Below, one piece after another: positions 1 through 13,466 of a stretch of 32,000 nucleotides of DNA. The stretch lies in the NCBI RefSeq assembly GCF_000400465.1, contig NW_008806285.1, forward strand, positions 60,001 to 92,000, read 5' to 3'. Positions within the stretch are counted from its first letter, which is position 1, and every line of letters starts with the position of its first letter. The position numbers and the translations under genes were made by a program. The DNA is from Wallemia ichthyophaga EXF-994 (taxonomy: Eukaryota > Fungi > Basidiomycota). Under the pieces are notes generated by a model. It was not told the DNA's origin. It did no database searches and worked only from the letters and a program-made list of their open reading frames with translations.

Positions 1-3000
1 ATCAGCAGATTCGAAGGATGTCTGTCACCAAGACCTAGGATATAACCAACCATACTCATCACTGCCAAGCTACGTGTGTAATTTGTTCGACGTTCCAACC
101 AAGCTTCACTATTTCTAGATTTCAGCCAAAGAATTCTGTAAAGATCTTGACCAGTGGTATTGTCGAGAGCGTACTCGAAGACTTCCAACTTGTTGAGGTG
201 ACACAGGTGGTCGAAATCTGGAGCCATTTGCAGCATCAATCTGTGCTCAATGTTCAATAGAATCTTTCTAGTCTCGCGATAGTCCCTGATCAGCATGTGC
301 ATCGTATCAGTGTTTTGCACCCATCCTAAAAGACCAGAGTTTGGAGAGATTGGTATAACGGAAAATCTGTGAATGGACAAATGACGTTTGAATGACTCCG
401 GATTTACGGAAAGGAGAAGATTGATGAGGCCGAACAATTGCATCGCACGCTCATCTTGGCGAAGATCTTCATGTCCTTTCAACAGATACATATACTCCTT
501 TCCATCACTACCCCTGATCTCCATCTTTCTTGGCCTTTGCTTCGTAGTCAACACCGACAATCTGGGAACGACCGCTGCTATTCTGATGACTGGCTTTCCT
601 GATTGGTACGTACCAGGCACAGCCAAGTCGAGATCTTTGGCGTTAAGTAAGCGTGGGGCCACATACTGTAGTTCGATAGCAGTGAGCGCGGTGACCTGCT
701 TCTCAATCTTCCTGAACACTGGGTAATACAGATCCCAAGCCTGGTTGAGGTCTGCCGCATGTTTGGTATGCTTCCACTTCCTGCAGTAGTCTCTAGCTTC
801 TATCAACTCCCTAGAGAACGCCTGAACGAATGAAGTCTCACGCAAAGTCTCTGGACCTCTATCGAGCAAGTCATGCAATGGCTTGAGCGTCTCAATCATA
901 GCAGCTGGGTTATGATGTACGAAGTAATGTCTGGATGCCTCTTCCAATCCTTCGTGCCACATTTCATTCCAAAGTATAGCAACCCTGATCAATTCATTAG
1001 AAACTAGTCCAGCTTGTTCAACCAGCTTGGGTGAATGCTCGCGCATCCTGTCCATTATAGCCAATGCAGCAGCTTTACGAGTCTGAGATTGAGATTTCGA
1101 CGCCACTGTGAGTGGATAGATCAATGCTTGTGGGTGGGCTCTCCCAACAGCACATAAGAGCTGATGGATCAATCTCCGAACGTTCAAGTTTGGTGCGTGG
1201 ATCCTAGCAATGATCTGCGGTATAACCTCCAGCCAAGTATCGACAGAGATGGTAGTGAATCCTTGAGACAGCGTTGAAGAGACGTCTTCGTGATAGCCGA
1301 ATTGAAACCACAATGTTAGCAGACGAAGCGTGTCCTGGAGGGAGTTACCGCCAGACAAGGCAATAGACTTGAAGAATGCCTGTACAGCAGGTACAATATG
1401 TGTGACTAGAGTCTCTGGCTCAACTTCTTCGCTAGCATTCTCGAGATGAGCGATAACTTCGAAGTTGGCCAGCGCAAAGGTGTGCCAAGCCTTATACCAA
1501 CTAGGGTCAAGTTGTGTGGCTTGGTAGAATGCACCGAGGATGTCATCAGCATCGTTGATAAACCAGTCCTCCTGAAGAGCAACCTGCCACTGACCTTGCT
1601 TGAAGTAACATCTAGCCAGTAAGTTTTTGTATTCTGTGATTTTGCCCTGCTTGTAGTACTCATTAGCAATAGCACGTGAGCTCTCAGTTGGGTTCAGGCC
1701 AAGGTCGTTGGATAGAGATGCCGTGAAATCTCTCAACCAATTCAAAGACTCGTCTTGAGCACCCTTTGCCCAAGTGAATTTGAGATGAGCGTAAATGACC
1801 TGTGGAGGGGCTTTTTGGGTAGTGCTGTTCGAGTAAACGCTTGGATCCGGCCCGAGGAGGGAGTTAATAACTTTTTCAGCCAGGAACATTCTATCAGACT
1901 TTCTGCATAAGTTGGCGAACTTGATCCACATCTGTGTGTCTTCTGCTGGAGACAGAACAAGTGTGCGCACTTGCAATATCCTCTGCCAGACTTCAACATC
2001 CGGTTGTGCGCCCTTCAATCTTCCCAAAATGTCAGTAAACACAGAAGTAAAAGATGATATCTCACCTCTTCATCCAAGTCTTGCGTATCGTCGATTGGCG
2101 GTCGGGTTGGTCAGCGAAGAGTTTATACTGAATGATTTCTTCCAGTTCAGCCAGCATCTGCACACGAACCACAACATTGTATGCTCGACCGTAAGACTCA
2201 GTAACTAGAGAAGTGAGTTCGCTGTCCAGACTCTCGCGCGCTTTCGTGATATGGTGGAGAGCCTTCTGGTAGTGCGAGTCGTGCACCGAGAGGATAGCTC
2301 TGTAGAAGAAGCGGTCAGGAGACTCTTGTTTCATTACAGTAATATAATTATCCATCATTTCCCAATTGTTCAGCGACCAAGCAGCAGCAGCAGCCAGCGG
2401 CGCCATAGCGCGACGCTCTTCGTGTCCGGCATTAACCCACTTATTTTGCACGAAGTCTGACAGCTGCTCCCACTCTCCAAGTGCATGGAGACACTTCATT
2501 CGTCCGAGCGTCACTTCAGGCGAATCACCTTCGATCTCCGCCTTCTCAGCGTAGGCGACCAGAGCCTCGTGCCATCTGCCGAGTTTCTCGTACCATTCTT
2601 CGTGGTGCACTATATCTAATTGCTCCCTAGCATATTTGAGCGTACCCCACGCTGCATCCTGTTGCTGCAACTTGGTGTTAACATGCACTAAGCTCTCAAT
2701 AACAGTTGGCGTAGCCTCAGTGAGGAATTCCAATTCTTGGTAGTGGAGTGCCTTTGCGTATGCGTGAACATTCATTGCGTATTCACCTAGCAATGGAATG
2801 TCAATCGGGAGTGGCTTGTCGTCATGCTCCATAAATTCAGCCAAATTGAGCAAAGTGTGCACAACATCTGGTGGTGCTGATGGTGATGTCAGCGCTCTTT
2901 CCATTGCTTTTCCAAGTTCGTCTTGATACTGGTCGTATAGATCCGTCCAGCACGAAACAAATGCTGCATTAAACAGTTCTCTCAGTAAAGGTGGATGAGC

Positions 3001-6000
3001 TTCAGCTAATCCTCTGCAAGCGCGAAGAGCATGCGATGGAGATTCCTTCAAGAACTCAATACCCAATCGCCTCAACCAGTCAGTCCAGTCTTCTCTGTTT
3101 TGAATGAGCTCCACATTTTCAATACCGTATGCCTTTTTGAGATGCTGCTGGTTGGCAATCAGCTTGGTATTTTCAACAGGTGGCTGATCGTCTGTCTTCT
3201 CTGCCGCAAAGCTGTCAAAGATACTGTAATCCTGTGGAAGTCTTTCGCCGTTCAAAAGCATATTGACAAATTGATTATATGGACCATGTTGAATACGATG
3301 TTTGAGCAGCACTTTGGAGATCATCGGTACGAAAACTGCGAAATCAGGACCAAGCTGCAGGACCAAAGCTGCCAGAATATCCATGGCAGCATTGCGCAAT
3401 TCGGCAGGACCAGACGAAAGCACTCTAGCTAACGGGTGAATTATTCTTGAAGCATGATCACAAAAATTGACCTGTCTCGACAGCTGACCGATGGTGATAA
3501 TAGCAGCTTTCCTTAACTGCACAGTCGACTCTGGTCGCTCGATAGTCTTGACAATAGCAGGTACGACGAGGTGGAGATACTCTTCAACGTTCGATCCAAA
3601 GACTGAGAAAGCTCGAAGAATGCGAATAAGAGTTGGCTGGCGTTTATCTGCTAATTCAAAGTCAAATGTTTGTAACATAGGTGGAAGGAGTACTGGTAAA
3701 TGGACTCTGAATTCCCCTTCAAGTGCTTTTGCGAGGATTTCAATGAGCGAGATGATTGTTATTTGTAGGGTGGAGTTGGGATTCCAAAACTCTCTGATCA
3801 ATTCCAATATGTCAGTTAAGAAGTTTCTAATGTGGTGCTTGACAATGCTAACGAGAATAGCAAGTTGCTGGAAGTAAAATTCTTGCAGAGAAGGCGCACA
3901 CGATCTTATAACACCCATGAAGGCAGGAACGATCTGGATCGAGTCAGTATAAAAAACTTCCACCTTGAGCACATTTCAACCTACCTGAGGTAAATATGAA
4001 ACACACTTCAAGCCCTGTGTTTTAAATATGTTCATGATAGCCTCGATAACGGCGTGGTGGTGGTTACTAAGAGAGGGATCTTTGAGCATATTGACGAGAG
4101 CGTTAAACGCTACCGTTTGATAGAAATCGTCGCTGGTATTCTGATTAGATGGTGTTACAACATCAGCAGGATAGATGGTCACAGATTCGGTAGTGACGTC
4201 CGATACAGGCTTCTCAATGTCCTTGTGTTTGTATGGATCGAGGGCACCAAGCAAACCCATCACACGCACCGTTTCAGTGCGCGTTGAAGGTGTCTGGTCA
4301 GTCTGCAATATCTTCACCAACGCATCCAACAAGCCAGGGTATCTGAGGTAAGGCTCGATGACGTAACCAGTGTTAGAAACGACCTGACCAAGCGTCCTCA
4401 ATGCAGCGTCTCGTCTGAGTAATGATGACTGGTCATGAAGGGTTTCTATCAGAAGTGGCATGATAATGTCAACGTGGCTCATTAATTCCTCACCACCAAC
4501 TTGGGCCAATTCACCAATACAGCAGAGAACGTTTGAAGATACAGTGGAGCTGTTGTCTGAGGCTTTTGGAAGCAGCACTTTCATCATTGGGTTGGCGTAT
4601 GGCTTGATCAGTCTCTGAGAAGCACTGACGAGCAGGCCCAACAATCTTGCACTCTCCTCCTTATTACGGCGTACTGTGGAATACTCTAACTCCGTCAGCA
4701 GCTGGATGAGAGCCTTACGGAGCGAAGGCATGACGTAGGCTGGGTTGTGACAAGAGAGTCGACCGATAATCTTGATAGCAACCTCTCGAACAGCAAATAC
4801 TTCATCGTTCAACGCTATAAACAAAGACCTTACATTTTCAGCCTGAGCTAGGTGTCTGTCAAACTTTTCATCTAGCGATTGGAGAACGGATAGTCTAATG
4901 TCGTACTCAGGATCGGCAATAGCCAGAGTCATGAGTTTGTCCAGCATGTCGCCTATGATCTCTATAGCATGTGTTGAAGTCTGGTATGTGACAGGGTCAT
5001 GAATAAAGGTAATGGAGCAGGTGAGGGCAGCAGCCTTGCGTATCTCAGCATTATCATCGTCTACGAATGGTAAAGCAGTATCACGGACAAACTCGTTGAG
5101 AATGTGACCGCTAAAATCGAAAGAGCCCAAAGTCTGTAAAGCTAGTTGAATCACTTCGGGTTTCTTAGCTTCAGAAGCTTGTACTTTGGATAACTCTCTA
5201 GCGGCAGCTGTTTGCGAGCTGGAAGGGTTAGGAGCACCAAGAGCTCGGTAAGACTTGTCGCTCAATATCAACGAAAGCATATTGAGTAACCTATCTTGAA
5301 TGGTTTTGAGGAGGGGTGGTATGTATTTAGCTATATCCCTCAAAGCGTTGACAAGCGATTCTGATAACTCTGTGCTGAAGATCTCTCCCAACAACTCATG
5401 TACGTGTTTAGCCAAGGATGGACCAATTGCGGCTGCAAGTTTTCCCAAACATTGCAGAATGGCATCTTCAGGAATTATGTAACCCTTTTTCGAGCGGTGA
5501 CGGAGTTGCTCGTCGATGGTAAACATGGCACTGTCCATATAATCCTTCATGGCACTTCCTACAGCACTGGCTACATGGCCTACGGCGTTATATGCAACAG
5601 TTCTTTCCCTCTCCTTTCGGATTGCACTCATAAGATGACCCATACTCAACCTAAGCTTCGTCTGTGTAAAAGCTTGAGGATCATAAGTGGCGAGAGTTGG
5701 AATGAGAAGTATTACAGTCTTGCGTATGAGAAAATCCCTGTGATCTTTGTAACGCAATATCAAATCACAGACGTCACCGAAACGAGGTTTTAAGAACATG
5801 CCAGCATGCAGGAGTAAATCTCTGTACACCAGGAGAGAAGCGTGGATGGTATCAACAGTGTTTATCTTAAGGCCAGCTTCTGCCTTTGCGTAGATGGAGT
5901 ATTGCATATCATTTCTATTCTGTGCTTTACGACGCTCCAAAATAACCAAACAAGCGGATAAAGCGTCTGAAGCAGCTTCTCTGATGGTGACTTTAGGGTC

Positions 6001-6638
6001 ACGCAGAGCGATCCAAATGCGTTCAATAGCTCTAGTGACAAAGGTATTGAATAACGCAGGACTATTCTGTGCGAGCTCTTTGATGATTAAAACGGCAGCG
6101 TATCGACCGCCTTCAGATCTGTCACCGGTGAGTAGTTCAAGTGCACGTGGAGCCTCGAAATCGATGAACTGTTCACCCAAGTAAGCACCACCAACGCGGG
6201 CAATGTGGCCTAAGCACTGAGAAGCGGCAATCATGACGTTCATGTCGCTGCAGGGGAGAGCAGGTTTGAGGTAGTTGTAGAAACGATAAAGCCGCTGCTT
6301 TTCTACTTGAATATCCAACAGAATATCTGTGAGTTGTTAGTTGAAACCATTGAATTTCGCGCGACTTGCCAATTGCGACGATTCCACCGAGCTTTTCATG
6401 GGGATAGTTGCTGTTGATTAATTCGAACAACCTGCGCATGACTTCAGATTGGAGCTTTGTGACGCTCTCAGCGCTGAGCTCAGCATTACAGCCAATGAAC
6501 TGAGAGATATGTGAGGGAGTGGAGAAGTGGAGATATGGGACGCACGAACTGCTGTAATTCGTGTGCAGCTTCGTTGCGTAGCTTTGGATCTCTGCTGCGT
6601 AAGCCCGCAAAGATACGCGCTAAGGCGTCTGTGTACAT
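1..6638 (-). CDS. TOR: Serine/threonine kinase TOR (HEAT, FAT, FRB, PI3K-like kinase); 3' end runs off the window start
   Basis: ATG at 6638 (in-frame TAA just upstream). Spliced N-terminus [28 protein letters not shown]. Introns at 6500-6545, 6327-6369 (GC-AG), 3934-3984 and 2020-2065. The translation contains the FRB motif [13 protein letters not shown] and kinase motifs [13 protein letters not shown] and [15 protein letters not shown]. Confidence 0.98.
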
Positions 6639-11556: not shown

Positions 11557-12447
11557 TCAACGCCTAGTTGAAGTGCGACCTTTTCTACCCACACCTGCAC
11601 GCGGACTGGAGTAGTAAGCGTAATGTGAGGCAAAGTTGGGAGATGTGAAAGCATCTTGTGGGATAGCCGGCAATTCGTTATCTTTTACTATCGGATATGG
11701 ACTGCTCTGTTTAGGAGAGCGCTTGTCCTTGATAGGTAAGTGATTAGTCCACGGTTTAACTGGTGGTGCAATAGGAGAGCTACCCGGTGTCCATTGACGC
11801 ATTGTTGGTGCTTGTCTCTGCGACTCCTTCTGCATGGCCTGGAGTTGTCTCAAATTTGTTATCTTGGTGGGAGCGGTAGTATATTTGTCGAGGACGGCTG
11901 GATGGATTGGTTGGATATCTTTCATGTCCTTGGTGTGCTTATTTTCCATCGCTTTAATATCGTCGAAAGAACTACCGGACGACAGCGAGGTCTTTGACGA
12001 GCTACCGACTGTTTCGTCCTCCACTTCCATCGCTTCGCTCTTGGCCTTTTGCCTGCGTCTGTAGCACTTGATGAGCGAGACAAAGGCGATGAGCAGCACG
12101 GCGAAAACGAATACTGAGATTGTTATTGGCAGCACTTTCATGCCGTCTATGGCCAATTTTTTGTCTTTGTTTGCATCGAAATCTCTGACACGAATGGATG
12201 GGGGCATCACATCGTCATCCTCATTGCTACTGCTGCCACTGGCGATTGTCTCATTCAAAACTCCGCGAGGAACCATGTTAACCCCGGCAATAGGCAGAGA
12301 CGGATTCTCCCAGTGTCTAAACATCGACTCTTGTTTTGGTAGTTGAAACTGCATCTGCATCTGCTCGAACCAGCCGAGATCAGCGAGATGGGGTGTAGGC
12401 TGTTGTTGCGCGTGTGGCTTTGTGTAGTCCAAATATATAGCTGGCAT
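11557..12447 (-). CDS. Hypothetical single-pass membrane protein with a long Ser/Pro-rich tail
   Basis: Intronless ORF whose first ATG is at 12447 (the track starts at an upstream TTG). One hydrophobic stretch VLPITISVFVFAVLLIAFVSLI followed by KCYRRRQKAK. No family recognised. Confidence 0.65.
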   Translation of the reverse strand: MPAIYLDYTKPHAQQQPTPHLADLGWFEQMQMQFQLPKQESMFRHWENPSLPIAGVNMVPRGVLNETIASGSSSNEDDDVMPPSIRVRDFDANKDKKLAIDGMKVLPITISVFVFAVLLIAFVSLIKCYRRRQKAKSEAMEVEDETVGSSSKTSLSSGSSFDDIKAMENKHTKDMKDIQPIHPAVLDKYTTAPTKITNLRQLQAMQKESQRQAPTMRQWTPGSSPIAPPVKPWTNHLPIKDKRSPKQSSPYPIVKDNELPAIPQDAFTSPNFASHYAYYSSPRAGVGRKGRTSTRR

Positions 12448-12762
12448 TATGTAGCGTGTGTAGTGTGTAATGCGTAGTGTGCTTATTTGCGTCGCAACCA
12501 GGCGAATAAGGTGAAACAAGAGGATGATTAGTGAGTAAACTTGTGGGCAGAAGGACTGAGAAACCAGCTCTCAGGGTGTATAGTGTTGGTTGAGAGTTTT
12601 GTGTAGGTCCTCACTGAACTTGGTCAACCGCTCTGATTCGCCCGGTTAGGAAAGTTAGCCTAAAATTTTAGCTCGAATGACCGGAAAAGGAAGGTGAGCG
12701 CGTAGAGGGCTAATTAAAAAGAGGAAGAATGAAAGAGGTAAGGAATTTACGCGTACGTCTTA

Positions 12763-13443
12763 TCAATCGACGTCATCCATGTTATCGATATCGACATCGT
12801 TCTCCTTGTACACGGCTAAAGTGTTGTTTAGCCCAACATTCCTAGCATGCTTCAGGACGTTAATCATAGCCCTATCGATATCATTTGAGTGGACATCGCC
12901 ATTCTCGAGGACGATGGATGGATAGAAGACGTAAGTCCAATCTGTGTGGGAGCGAGCGAGTGAGTAAGTAGCTGGAATAACCGAAGAACCCCACGTACCT
13001 CTGAGAATAAGATCGTCTGCTCCACCGCGAGCAGTAACCATAGACTGCTGTACAACGGAAGTGATACAATTACGAATCCGCTTGCGCAGTCTATTCCTCA
13101 CTACAGCCTTCTTTGAAGTGAAAGCTATGGGCGTGATTACGACCAGAGGCAACTCCGCCACATTCATCCGCTTCAAGCCGTATCCATCCTGCCGACCAAT
13201 AGCATCGAGGTACAACCAAAACCTCAGACCAAAGTCGTTGTGTGCGAATGGCAGAGAACTCAGTTTAGTTTGTATGAGTGCGTGTGTTTTGGACGGCGGG
13301 AGAATCTTCAACGTGAAGTACGCGTGCGGGAAGGTGAACAAACCGCGATCACCCAATGTACCAAGATTGACGCCGTAGCCAAAAGAAAGAATTTTCACAG
13401 ATTTATTTGTCTTTTTACTGAGCAATATCTGGCTGCGCTGCAT
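12763..13443 (-). CDS. Hypothetical protein with a bacterial RNase P protein (RnpA) RNR-like motif, possibly mitochondrial
   Basis: ATG at 13443. Probable 57-nt intron 12942-12998 (GTACGT...CACAG). Contains SKKAVVRNRLRKRIR and has a basic N-terminus with no acidic residue in the first ~30 aa. The gene is well supported; the RnpA relationship is inference. Confidence 0.6.
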   Translation of the reverse strand: MQRSQILLSKKTNKSVKILSFGYGVNLGTLGDRGLFTFPHAYFTLKILPPSKTHALIQTKLSSLPFAHNDFGLRFWLYLDAIGRQDGYGLKRMNVAELPLVVITPIAFTSKKAVVRNRLRKRIRNCITSVVQQSMVTARGGADDLILRGTWGSSVIPATYSLARSHTDWTYVFYPSIVLENGDVHSNDIDRAMINVLKHARNVGLNNTLAVYKENDVDIDNMDDVD

Positions 13444-13466
13444 TCAAGAAGATCGAAGACCAAAAA

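Follow-up and report, generated by a model that had tools for sequence, protein, structure and literature searches.

The reading frame at positions 12763..13443 (reverse strand) of the window, the whole 32,000-nucleotide stretch of Wallemia ichthyophaga EXF-994 contig NW_008806285.1 analysed here, is a genuine gene that is under constraint and restricted to the Wallemiales. Its predicted product is a basic protein of 207 aa and 23 kDa (pI about 9.7) that ends in an acidic tail, occurring in the Wallemiales only, whose residues 95-148 are predicted to form a beta-strand followed by a long arginine-rich helix. With a confidence only a little better than even, we read it as a lineage-restricted basic protein in which this invariant strand and arginine-rich helix bind RNA, much as the RNR helix of the bacterial RNase P protein (RnpA) does, and whose compartment leans towards the mitochondrion. 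At present it counts among the many conserved proteins peculiar to the lineage of a salt-loving, extremophilic fungus, here with an RnpA-like basic helix, and is not yet a discovery.

A spliced and constrained gene of the Wallemiales

The frame consists of 226 uninterrupted codons and contains LPLVVITPIAFTSKKAVVRNRLRKRIRNCI, as well as the elements FTLKIL, WTYVFYP and DIDRAMINVLK in that order. The initial annotation had placed the gene and its motif correctly, at 12763-13443; the 226-aa ORF found there is, however, not the coding sequence, the real product having 207 aa and a 57-nt intron lying at 12942..12998. The best database match is the W. ichthyophaga hypothetical protein J056_000841 / E3P92_01466, of 207 aa, which in sequence alignment is identical to the 226-aa ORF apart from a 19-residue gap. 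Residues 149-167 of the ORF (GTWGSS...RSHT) are intronic, and removal of the intron yields a protein of 207 aa (computed pI 9.65 and 23.4 kDa) that is an exact copy of the W. ichthyophaga database protein P0002. The intron is exactly in frame and free of stop codons, being translated in the unspliced ORF as GTWGSSVIPATYSLARSHT, so that a reading from ORFs alone gives a plausible but wrong protein of 226 aa, with 19 residues too many. The features of the gene and of its surroundings are as follows.

12999..13443, reverse strand: exon 1, aa 1-148 and the first base of codon D149 (ORF list, alignment of Wallemia orthologues and splice reconstruction)
12942..12998, reverse strand: spliceosomal intron of 57 nt, GTACGT...ACAG (orthologue alignment and splice reconstruction)
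12763..12941, reverse strand: exon 2, aa 149-207 after splicing and the stop codon (orthologue alignment and splice reconstruction)
13387..13443, reverse strand: N-terminal 19 residues, MQRSQILLSKKTNKSVKIL (composition and hydrophobic moment in four orthologues)
13063..13116, reverse strand: RNR-like arginine-rich helix S110-I127, SKKAVVRNRLRKRIRNCI (PF00825, TIGR00188, our own RnpA HMM and hhalign)
13444..13466, no strand: spacer of 23 bp between the divergent start codons of the gene and of glutamyl-tRNA synthetase (GluRS)
13467, forward strand: start of GluRS
11557..12519, reverse strand: downstream neighbour, an ORF of about 280-320 aa without a Pfam match
2062..6318, reverse strand: TOR kinase gene, two adjacent long ORFs with HEAT, mTOR_dom and FAT domains

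Exon 1 comprises the basic N-terminus together with the conserved core and the RNR-like helix; exon 2 encodes DWTYVFYP..., then the C-terminal helix (NDIDRAMINVLKHAR) and an acidic tail, DVDIDNMDDVD. The position of the intron, after DDLILR and splitting an Asp codon, is common to W. hederae (locus L082), W. mellicola (L083) and a metagenomic Wallemiales contig (L084); the intron shifts the frame in W. hederae and in the metagenomic contig, and contains stop codons in all three relatives. Where prokaryote-style calling was applied to relatives, on metagenomic and Logan contigs, the gene is broken or lengthened at the intron (P0006, P0007, P0008, P0130). An extra intron, after codon 15 (KPKVK|ILSFGY), is present in W. 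mellicola and in the metagenomic relative and absent from W. ichthyophaga and W. hederae. The orthologue models of W. mellicola vary by strain, with 155, 190 or 202 aa (P0004 cluster), because its two introns have been handled differently.

Among the four orthologues, pN is 0.12-0.26 against a saturated pS of 0.77-0.93. The most constrained segment in their alignment is aa 95-148, which is nearly invariant and includes RNRLRKRIR. The initial annotation had made its reading depend on conservation of the RNR motif in homologues, and the core R-N-R-L-R-K-R-I-R (R116-R124) is indeed invariant in every orthologue. The most divergent orthologue available comes from an AT-rich, Wallemia-like fungus that recurs, with the same synteny, in metagenome assemblies from ENA and Logan (L084; P0006 cluster), and of which P0144 is found on 41 contigs, the longest of 193 kb; in the L084 orthologue 'SKKAVV' is replaced by 'SKLSIH' and RNRLRKRIRK is unchanged.

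Searches covering about 15 billion proteins retrieved no homologue outside the Wallemiales. Only Wallemia-type sequences and fragments came out of a word-indexed search of 5.8 billion clusters, of a word-indexed search with the family profile at E<=10, and of an exhaustive search of 1.84 billion representatives with a HMMER profile. Likewise, these protein searches did not detect the family in Tremella, whose mtDNA carries rnpB. Independent gene models of the protein exist in many Wallemia assemblies, and all source names for it are 'hypothetical' or 'uncharacterized'.

The gene order porin, GluRS, this gene, an ORF of 280-290 aa and NAD synthase is conserved in L082, L083 and L084. The head-to-head pairing with GluRS is also kept in these three loci, with a spacing of roughly 55-100 bp. 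In W. ichthyophaga the 23-bp spacer implies a bidirectional promoter region common to both genes; with start codons this close, the 5' UTR of either gene must reach into the other gene or its promoter, and conservation of the pairing across the Wallemiales suggests co-regulation. A chimeric prediction from a Logan contig of 1035 bp (P0129) places MYTFQHSYFTLKIL...WLYLDA in frame with the GST-like N-terminal part of GluRS; since the genes that it joins run divergently in the genome, it has the look of an artefact of assembly (a fold-back or inversion) at the shared promoter.

The downstream neighbour keeps its position in all four Wallemiales loci (L082 4966-5891, L083 4944-5836, L084 5885-6724); it is rich in Ser, has a single hydrophobic stretch, VLPITISVFVFAVLLIAFVSLI, and probably spans a membrane once. 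The two ORFs of the TOR kinase gene are set apart by three bases only (3973-3975); a short intron or a lone stop codon probably accounts for the split. Further genes in the window are ordinary nuclear ones, including those for Rot1, a zinc-type alcohol dehydrogenase and the condensin Cnd3, and the window contains no Rfam match and no tRNA. The spliceosomal intron and the nuclear neighbours (TOR, GluRS, porin, Rot1, condensin) bear out the earlier description of a nuclear fungal gene.

Extent of the similarity to bacterial RnpA

The sole stretch of the protein that resembles bacterial RnpA is the helix S110-I127, its basic helix being SKKAVVRNRLRKRIRNC. In Pfam, PF00825 (Ribonuclease_P) was the top match, with E 0.027 and 15.0 bits for the unspliced and E 0.062 and 13.8 bits for the spliced sequence, and aligned aa 111-134 to profile positions 53-75. 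In NCBIfam, TIGR00188 (rnpA) was the sole match (E 0.0045-0.0054, 17.0-17.2 bits), with aa 93-129 aligned to profile positions 35-70. Both alignments fall on the correct region of the RnpA models, which is the RNR helix. The whole protein, spliced or unspliced, reached neither of the curated cut-offs, 22.3 bits for PF00825 and 38.35 bits for TIGR00188, and at any score the matches extended to two (PF00825) and three (TIGR00188) of the four orthologues. The initial annotation had proposed the PF00825 search as a check, and its 13.8-15.0 bits go against the assignment.

A Pfam scan at E<=10 returned PF00825, DUF7269 and DUF3819 only, all of them sub-threshold. For the spliced protein, the evidently spurious match to DUF3819 (Not1), with E 0.066, ties with PF00825 over the same residues. 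We also ran ten nonsense controls, namely four reversed orthologues and six block-shuffled copies; one of the ten, a reversed sequence, reached a Pfam E of 0.029, equal in strength to the PF00825 match. In NCBIfam the best of the ten controls had E 0.048, about ten times worse than the TIGR00188 match (E 0.0045). The ORF had been picked for its motif in the first place, and hence library E-values are not independent evidence. A motif match picked by eye always returns as the 'top HMM hit' for that family, a caution to which the reversed control, at the same E-value, gives weight. The resemblance to RnpA thus exceeds chance only weakly: RnpA is the best match in both Pfam and NCBIfam, although the scores lie far below the cut-offs, the alignments span 24-37 residues and a control reached E 0.029.

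The B. subtilis RnpA motif that the initial annotation had quoted is accurate (PDB chains 4jg4/1a6f). As RNR consensus we used K-x4-5-A-x2-R-N-x2-[KR]-R-x2-[RK], checked against the PDB RnpA sequences. The core A113-VV-R116-N117-RL-R120-K121-RI-R124 fits this consensus except that K stands once for R; the upstream Lys comes immediately before the Ala, versus 4-5 residues away in the consensus, and the conserved Ala is a Ser in the metagenomic orthologue. In a proteome the size of that of Wallemia, a strict motif, A-x2-R-N-R-[ILVM]-[KR][KR]-x2-[KR], should occur by chance about 0.008 times and a relaxed form about 0.6 times; these expectations assume independent residue frequencies and are underestimates, since basic residues cluster, and the ORF was chosen for the motif.

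For a comparison of profiles, we built an RnpA profile from a 48-sequence non-redundant alignment of 80 diverse metagenomic loci plus T. maritima, the loci coming from a metagenome scan with a consensus-first alignment. Other sources were unusable for this purpose: a scan of genome contigs gave only Enterobacterales, a protein search with the RnpA alignment only Enterobacterales and Bacillus, and a scan of viral contigs no RnpA. With the resulting HMM, HMMER aligned aa 110-126 alone (17 residues, 8.7 bits). Against the 48-sequence profile, hhalign aligned 17 columns (aa 111-127) with a probability of 20% and P 0.0011; against a narrower RnpA alignment the probability was 3%, and the global mode returned nothing. 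When the residues of the 16-residue motif block were shuffled 1000 times, the block scored above 964-1000 of the shuffled versions against the RnpA motif profile, indicating that the order of the residues, and not composition alone, is RnpA-like.

Outside the helix the likeness ends. The initial annotation had fitted the flanking elements to the RnpA fold, a fit that receives no statistical support. Against RnpA sub-profiles, 126-433 of 1000 shuffles did as well as or better than the N flank, and for the C flank the figure was 149-1000 of 1000. In an alignment extended outwards from the motif, the score was reached by 23-62 of 300 shuffles on the N side and by 102-178 of 300 on the C side. Similarity to the alpha1 cleft, the sheet, beta4 and alpha3 of the RnpA domain (about 110 aa) was undetectable in these sub-profile and anchored tests. 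Two equivalences were dropped on the null shuffle tests: 'NDFGLRF' with alpha1 'EDFQKVF' and its D/E-F-x2-V-F pattern, drawn by eye at 40 versus 39 residues upstream of the RNR motif, and 'MVTARGGADDL' with beta4 'VVVAKKGVADL', from a low-mact hhalign realignment and MAFFT.

A single-sequence search of the PDB found neither RnpA nor any other match, and the family profile retrieved no chain at E<=10, though the PDB holds 11 distinct RnpA sequences. Nor was there similarity, in Pfam at E<=10 or in the PDB, to the eukaryotic and archaeal RNase P-MRP proteins (Pop5/Rpp14, Pop4, Rpp1, Rpr2, Pop7) or to solved fungal mitoribosomal proteins.

RnpA folds as an alpha-beta sandwich, alpha-beta-beta-beta-alpha-beta-alpha, whose RNR helix lies in a left-handed beta-alpha-beta crossover. 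AlphaFold2 models of the Wallemia protein, from an alignment of four orthologues, had a mean pLDDT of 32.5 for the full length and 43.6 for aa 17-193, too poor either way. A Foldseek search of the PDB with these low-confidence models gave a best E of 0.42 and no RnpA among the top 50; GNAT/HAT-like matches with E of about 0.4-1 were disregarded on account of the low confidence, and forcing RnpA sequences into the AlphaFold alignment was rejected as circular. The order predicted, again with low confidence, is two strands, a helix at 50-62, strands at ~72-82 and 92-102, the RNR helix at 113-133 and a C-terminal helix at 167-186, the last of these in both runs. Together with the N-terminal extension, this modelled order is compatible with the alpha-beta-beta-alpha-beta-alpha core of RnpA, and compatibility is all that it expresses.

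Possible functions of the arginine-rich helix

In the reading that we favour, the arginine-rich helix most likely offers structured RNA a surface to bind, by analogy with the RNR helix in bacterial RnpA. The likeness to RnpA over about 17 residues would then reflect a similar RNA-binding helix on a scaffold that is otherwise unrelated or has diverged beyond recognition. The outcome of the RnpA membership tests lowers the proposition that the protein is an RnpA much more than the proposition that its helix works like an RNR helix. The data show the structure of the gene, its conservation, its narrow taxonomic range and how far, and how weakly, it resembles RnpA; that the protein binds RNA, where it resides and whether it takes part in processing tRNA or other RNA are matters of inference.

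The compartment is judged from the N-terminus, which the initial annotation had rightly called basic and acid-free: all four orthologues have a basic N-terminus with almost no acidic residues. In W. ichthyophaga the first 19 residues are basic and free of acidic residues, none occurring before D32, and among the orthologues this character is conserved while the sequence is poorly so. The first 20 residues of the four orthologues contain 3-5 K/R and 0-1 D/E, with a hydrophobic moment of 0.38-0.75 (moderate amphipathicity), and the conserved block starts at residue 14-16. Judging by this composition, the 19 residues are possibly a short mitochondrial presequence, and a mitochondrial location is slightly favoured. 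The basic helix could, from its sequence, equally serve as a nuclear or nucleolar signal.

Indeed, basic helices can also serve in localisation or in the binding of DNA or protein, and the first alternative is that the arginine-rich stretch acts mainly in one of these ways, as a nuclear or nucleolar signal or in contacts with DNA or protein, the function of the protein being unconnected with RNase P and RNA processing and its match to RnpA pure coincidence. RNRLRKRIRK, as read from the sequence, resembles a classical monopartite basic signal, Pfam matches of equal strength arose from a reversed sequence and from unrelated families over the same residues, and the protein has no other similarity to RnpA. 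Coincidence accords poorly, however, with the result of the motif-block shuffles, and the helix lies inside the most conserved block of 50 residues and not in a linker, while the N-terminus looks more organellar than nuclear. We regard this alternative as unlikely, though it keeps some weight.

The central inference of the initial annotation was an endosymbiont-derived RnpA acting with a mitochondrial P RNA, and the evidence leans against it. This alternative would make the protein a true, highly diverged RnpA, imported as the cofactor of a mitochondrially encoded P RNA and helping to cleave the 5' leaders of mitochondrial pre-tRNAs. Some of the background suits it. PRORP, the protein-only RNase P, is absent from Fungi (PMC10941002), and the mitochondrial RNase P proteins of fungi outside budding yeast are unidentified (PMC3790967). 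No basidiomycete rnpB was known as of 2012 (PMC3790967); the gene has since been reported in some mitochondrial genomes of Agaricomycotina, for instance in the mtDNA of Tremella fuciformis (PMC7315562), and in Malassezia slooffiae, with the remark that it is uncommon among Basidiomycetes (PMC10113387). Literature searches brought up no fungal protein described as RnpA-like, no Wallemia mitogenome carrying rnpB and no mention of the locus itself.

The protein itself offers further points in favour of RnpA descent: the best match in both libraries lies on the correct part of the models, the core A-x2-R-N-R-L-[KR]-[KR]-x2-R is matched and its R-N-R-L-R-K-R-I-R segment invariant in the family, the hhalign P is 0.0011, and the protein is basic with an acid-free N-terminus. 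Against these stand scores of 14-17 bits where the cut-offs require 22.3 and 38.35, a spliced Pfam match that ties with a spurious one and is equalled by a reversed control, a likeness that stops at the helix with flanks no better than shuffles, and a family profile that misses all 11 RnpA sequences of the PDB. The protein is also nearly twice the size of RnpA, the K-x4-5-A spacing upstream is absent, one R is a K and the Ala a Ser in one orthologue. No orthologue is detectable in other fungi, including lineages with a mitochondrial rnpB, which is itself uncommon in Basidiomycota, and the ORF was chosen for its motif. We therefore consider a diverged RnpA of this kind improbable, and give the same low standing to true RnpA descent with a role in mitochondrial RNase P. 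If a nuclear-encoded, imported descendant of RnpA were nonetheless confirmed, it would fill the protein gap in fungal mitochondrial RNase P and extend the Ostreococcus precedent to Fungi.

A related proposal is a relic of a bacterial-type P protein in which the RNR helix alone is still recognisable and about 90 residues have been added, and which works with a mitochondrial P RNA. This we hold to be distinctly improbable too; if true, Fungi would have their first P protein of bacterial type, and with it a lead to the protein subunits of mitochondrial RNase P that have yet to be identified in fungi outside the budding yeasts. Finally, a non-functional chance ORF beside GluRS, for which the unusually tight 23-bp spacing to the GluRS start codon might speak, is effectively refuted by the strong purifying selection with saturated synonymous sites and by an intron whose position is conserved while its sequences diverge, and it also runs against the synteny in four species and the independent gene models in many Wallemia assemblies.

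Comparison with known systems

Bacterial RnpA, with the structures 1A6F, 1NZ0, 1D6T and 2LJP, is like the Wallemia protein a small basic protein with a beta-strand followed by an arginine-rich helix carrying A-x2-R-N-R-[IL]-[KR]-[KR]-x2-R, and the Wallemia motif aligns without gaps to A59-R70 of the E. coli protein and to B. subtilis RnpA. The two differ in length, 207 aa in Wallemia versus about 115-120 aa in RnpA, and in the loop from KK to Ala, which is 3-4 residues shorter in Wallemia; moreover, the Wallemia protein is the product of a eukaryotic nuclear gene with an intron.

A precedent for a nuclear gene of a bacterial-type P protein that serves organelle-encoded P RNA is found in Ostreococcus, where a nuclear bacterial-like P protein serves the organellar P RNAs and complements an E. 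coli rnpA ts mutant (PMC4919922). The Ostreococcus protein is bacterial-like, whereas the Wallemia protein falls below every RnpA threshold, a distinction made by description only. Among fungal mitochondrial RNase P proteins only Rpm2 of yeast has been identified; it is nuclear-encoded and imported. The initial annotation had rightly set it apart from RnpA, for Rpm2 is unrelated to other RNase P proteins (PMC4919922). The Wallemia protein has about a fifth of its size, and is again set apart from it by description only.

The Wallemia protein also resembles the RNA-binding helices of the arginine-rich-motif type, in that a short, invariant helix dense in Arg and Lys is its most conserved element. 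By analogy, such a helix is likely to be its mode of action. Arginine-rich-motif helices form a functional class and not a homologous family, and the Wallemia helix sits within a conserved domain of about 180 aa.
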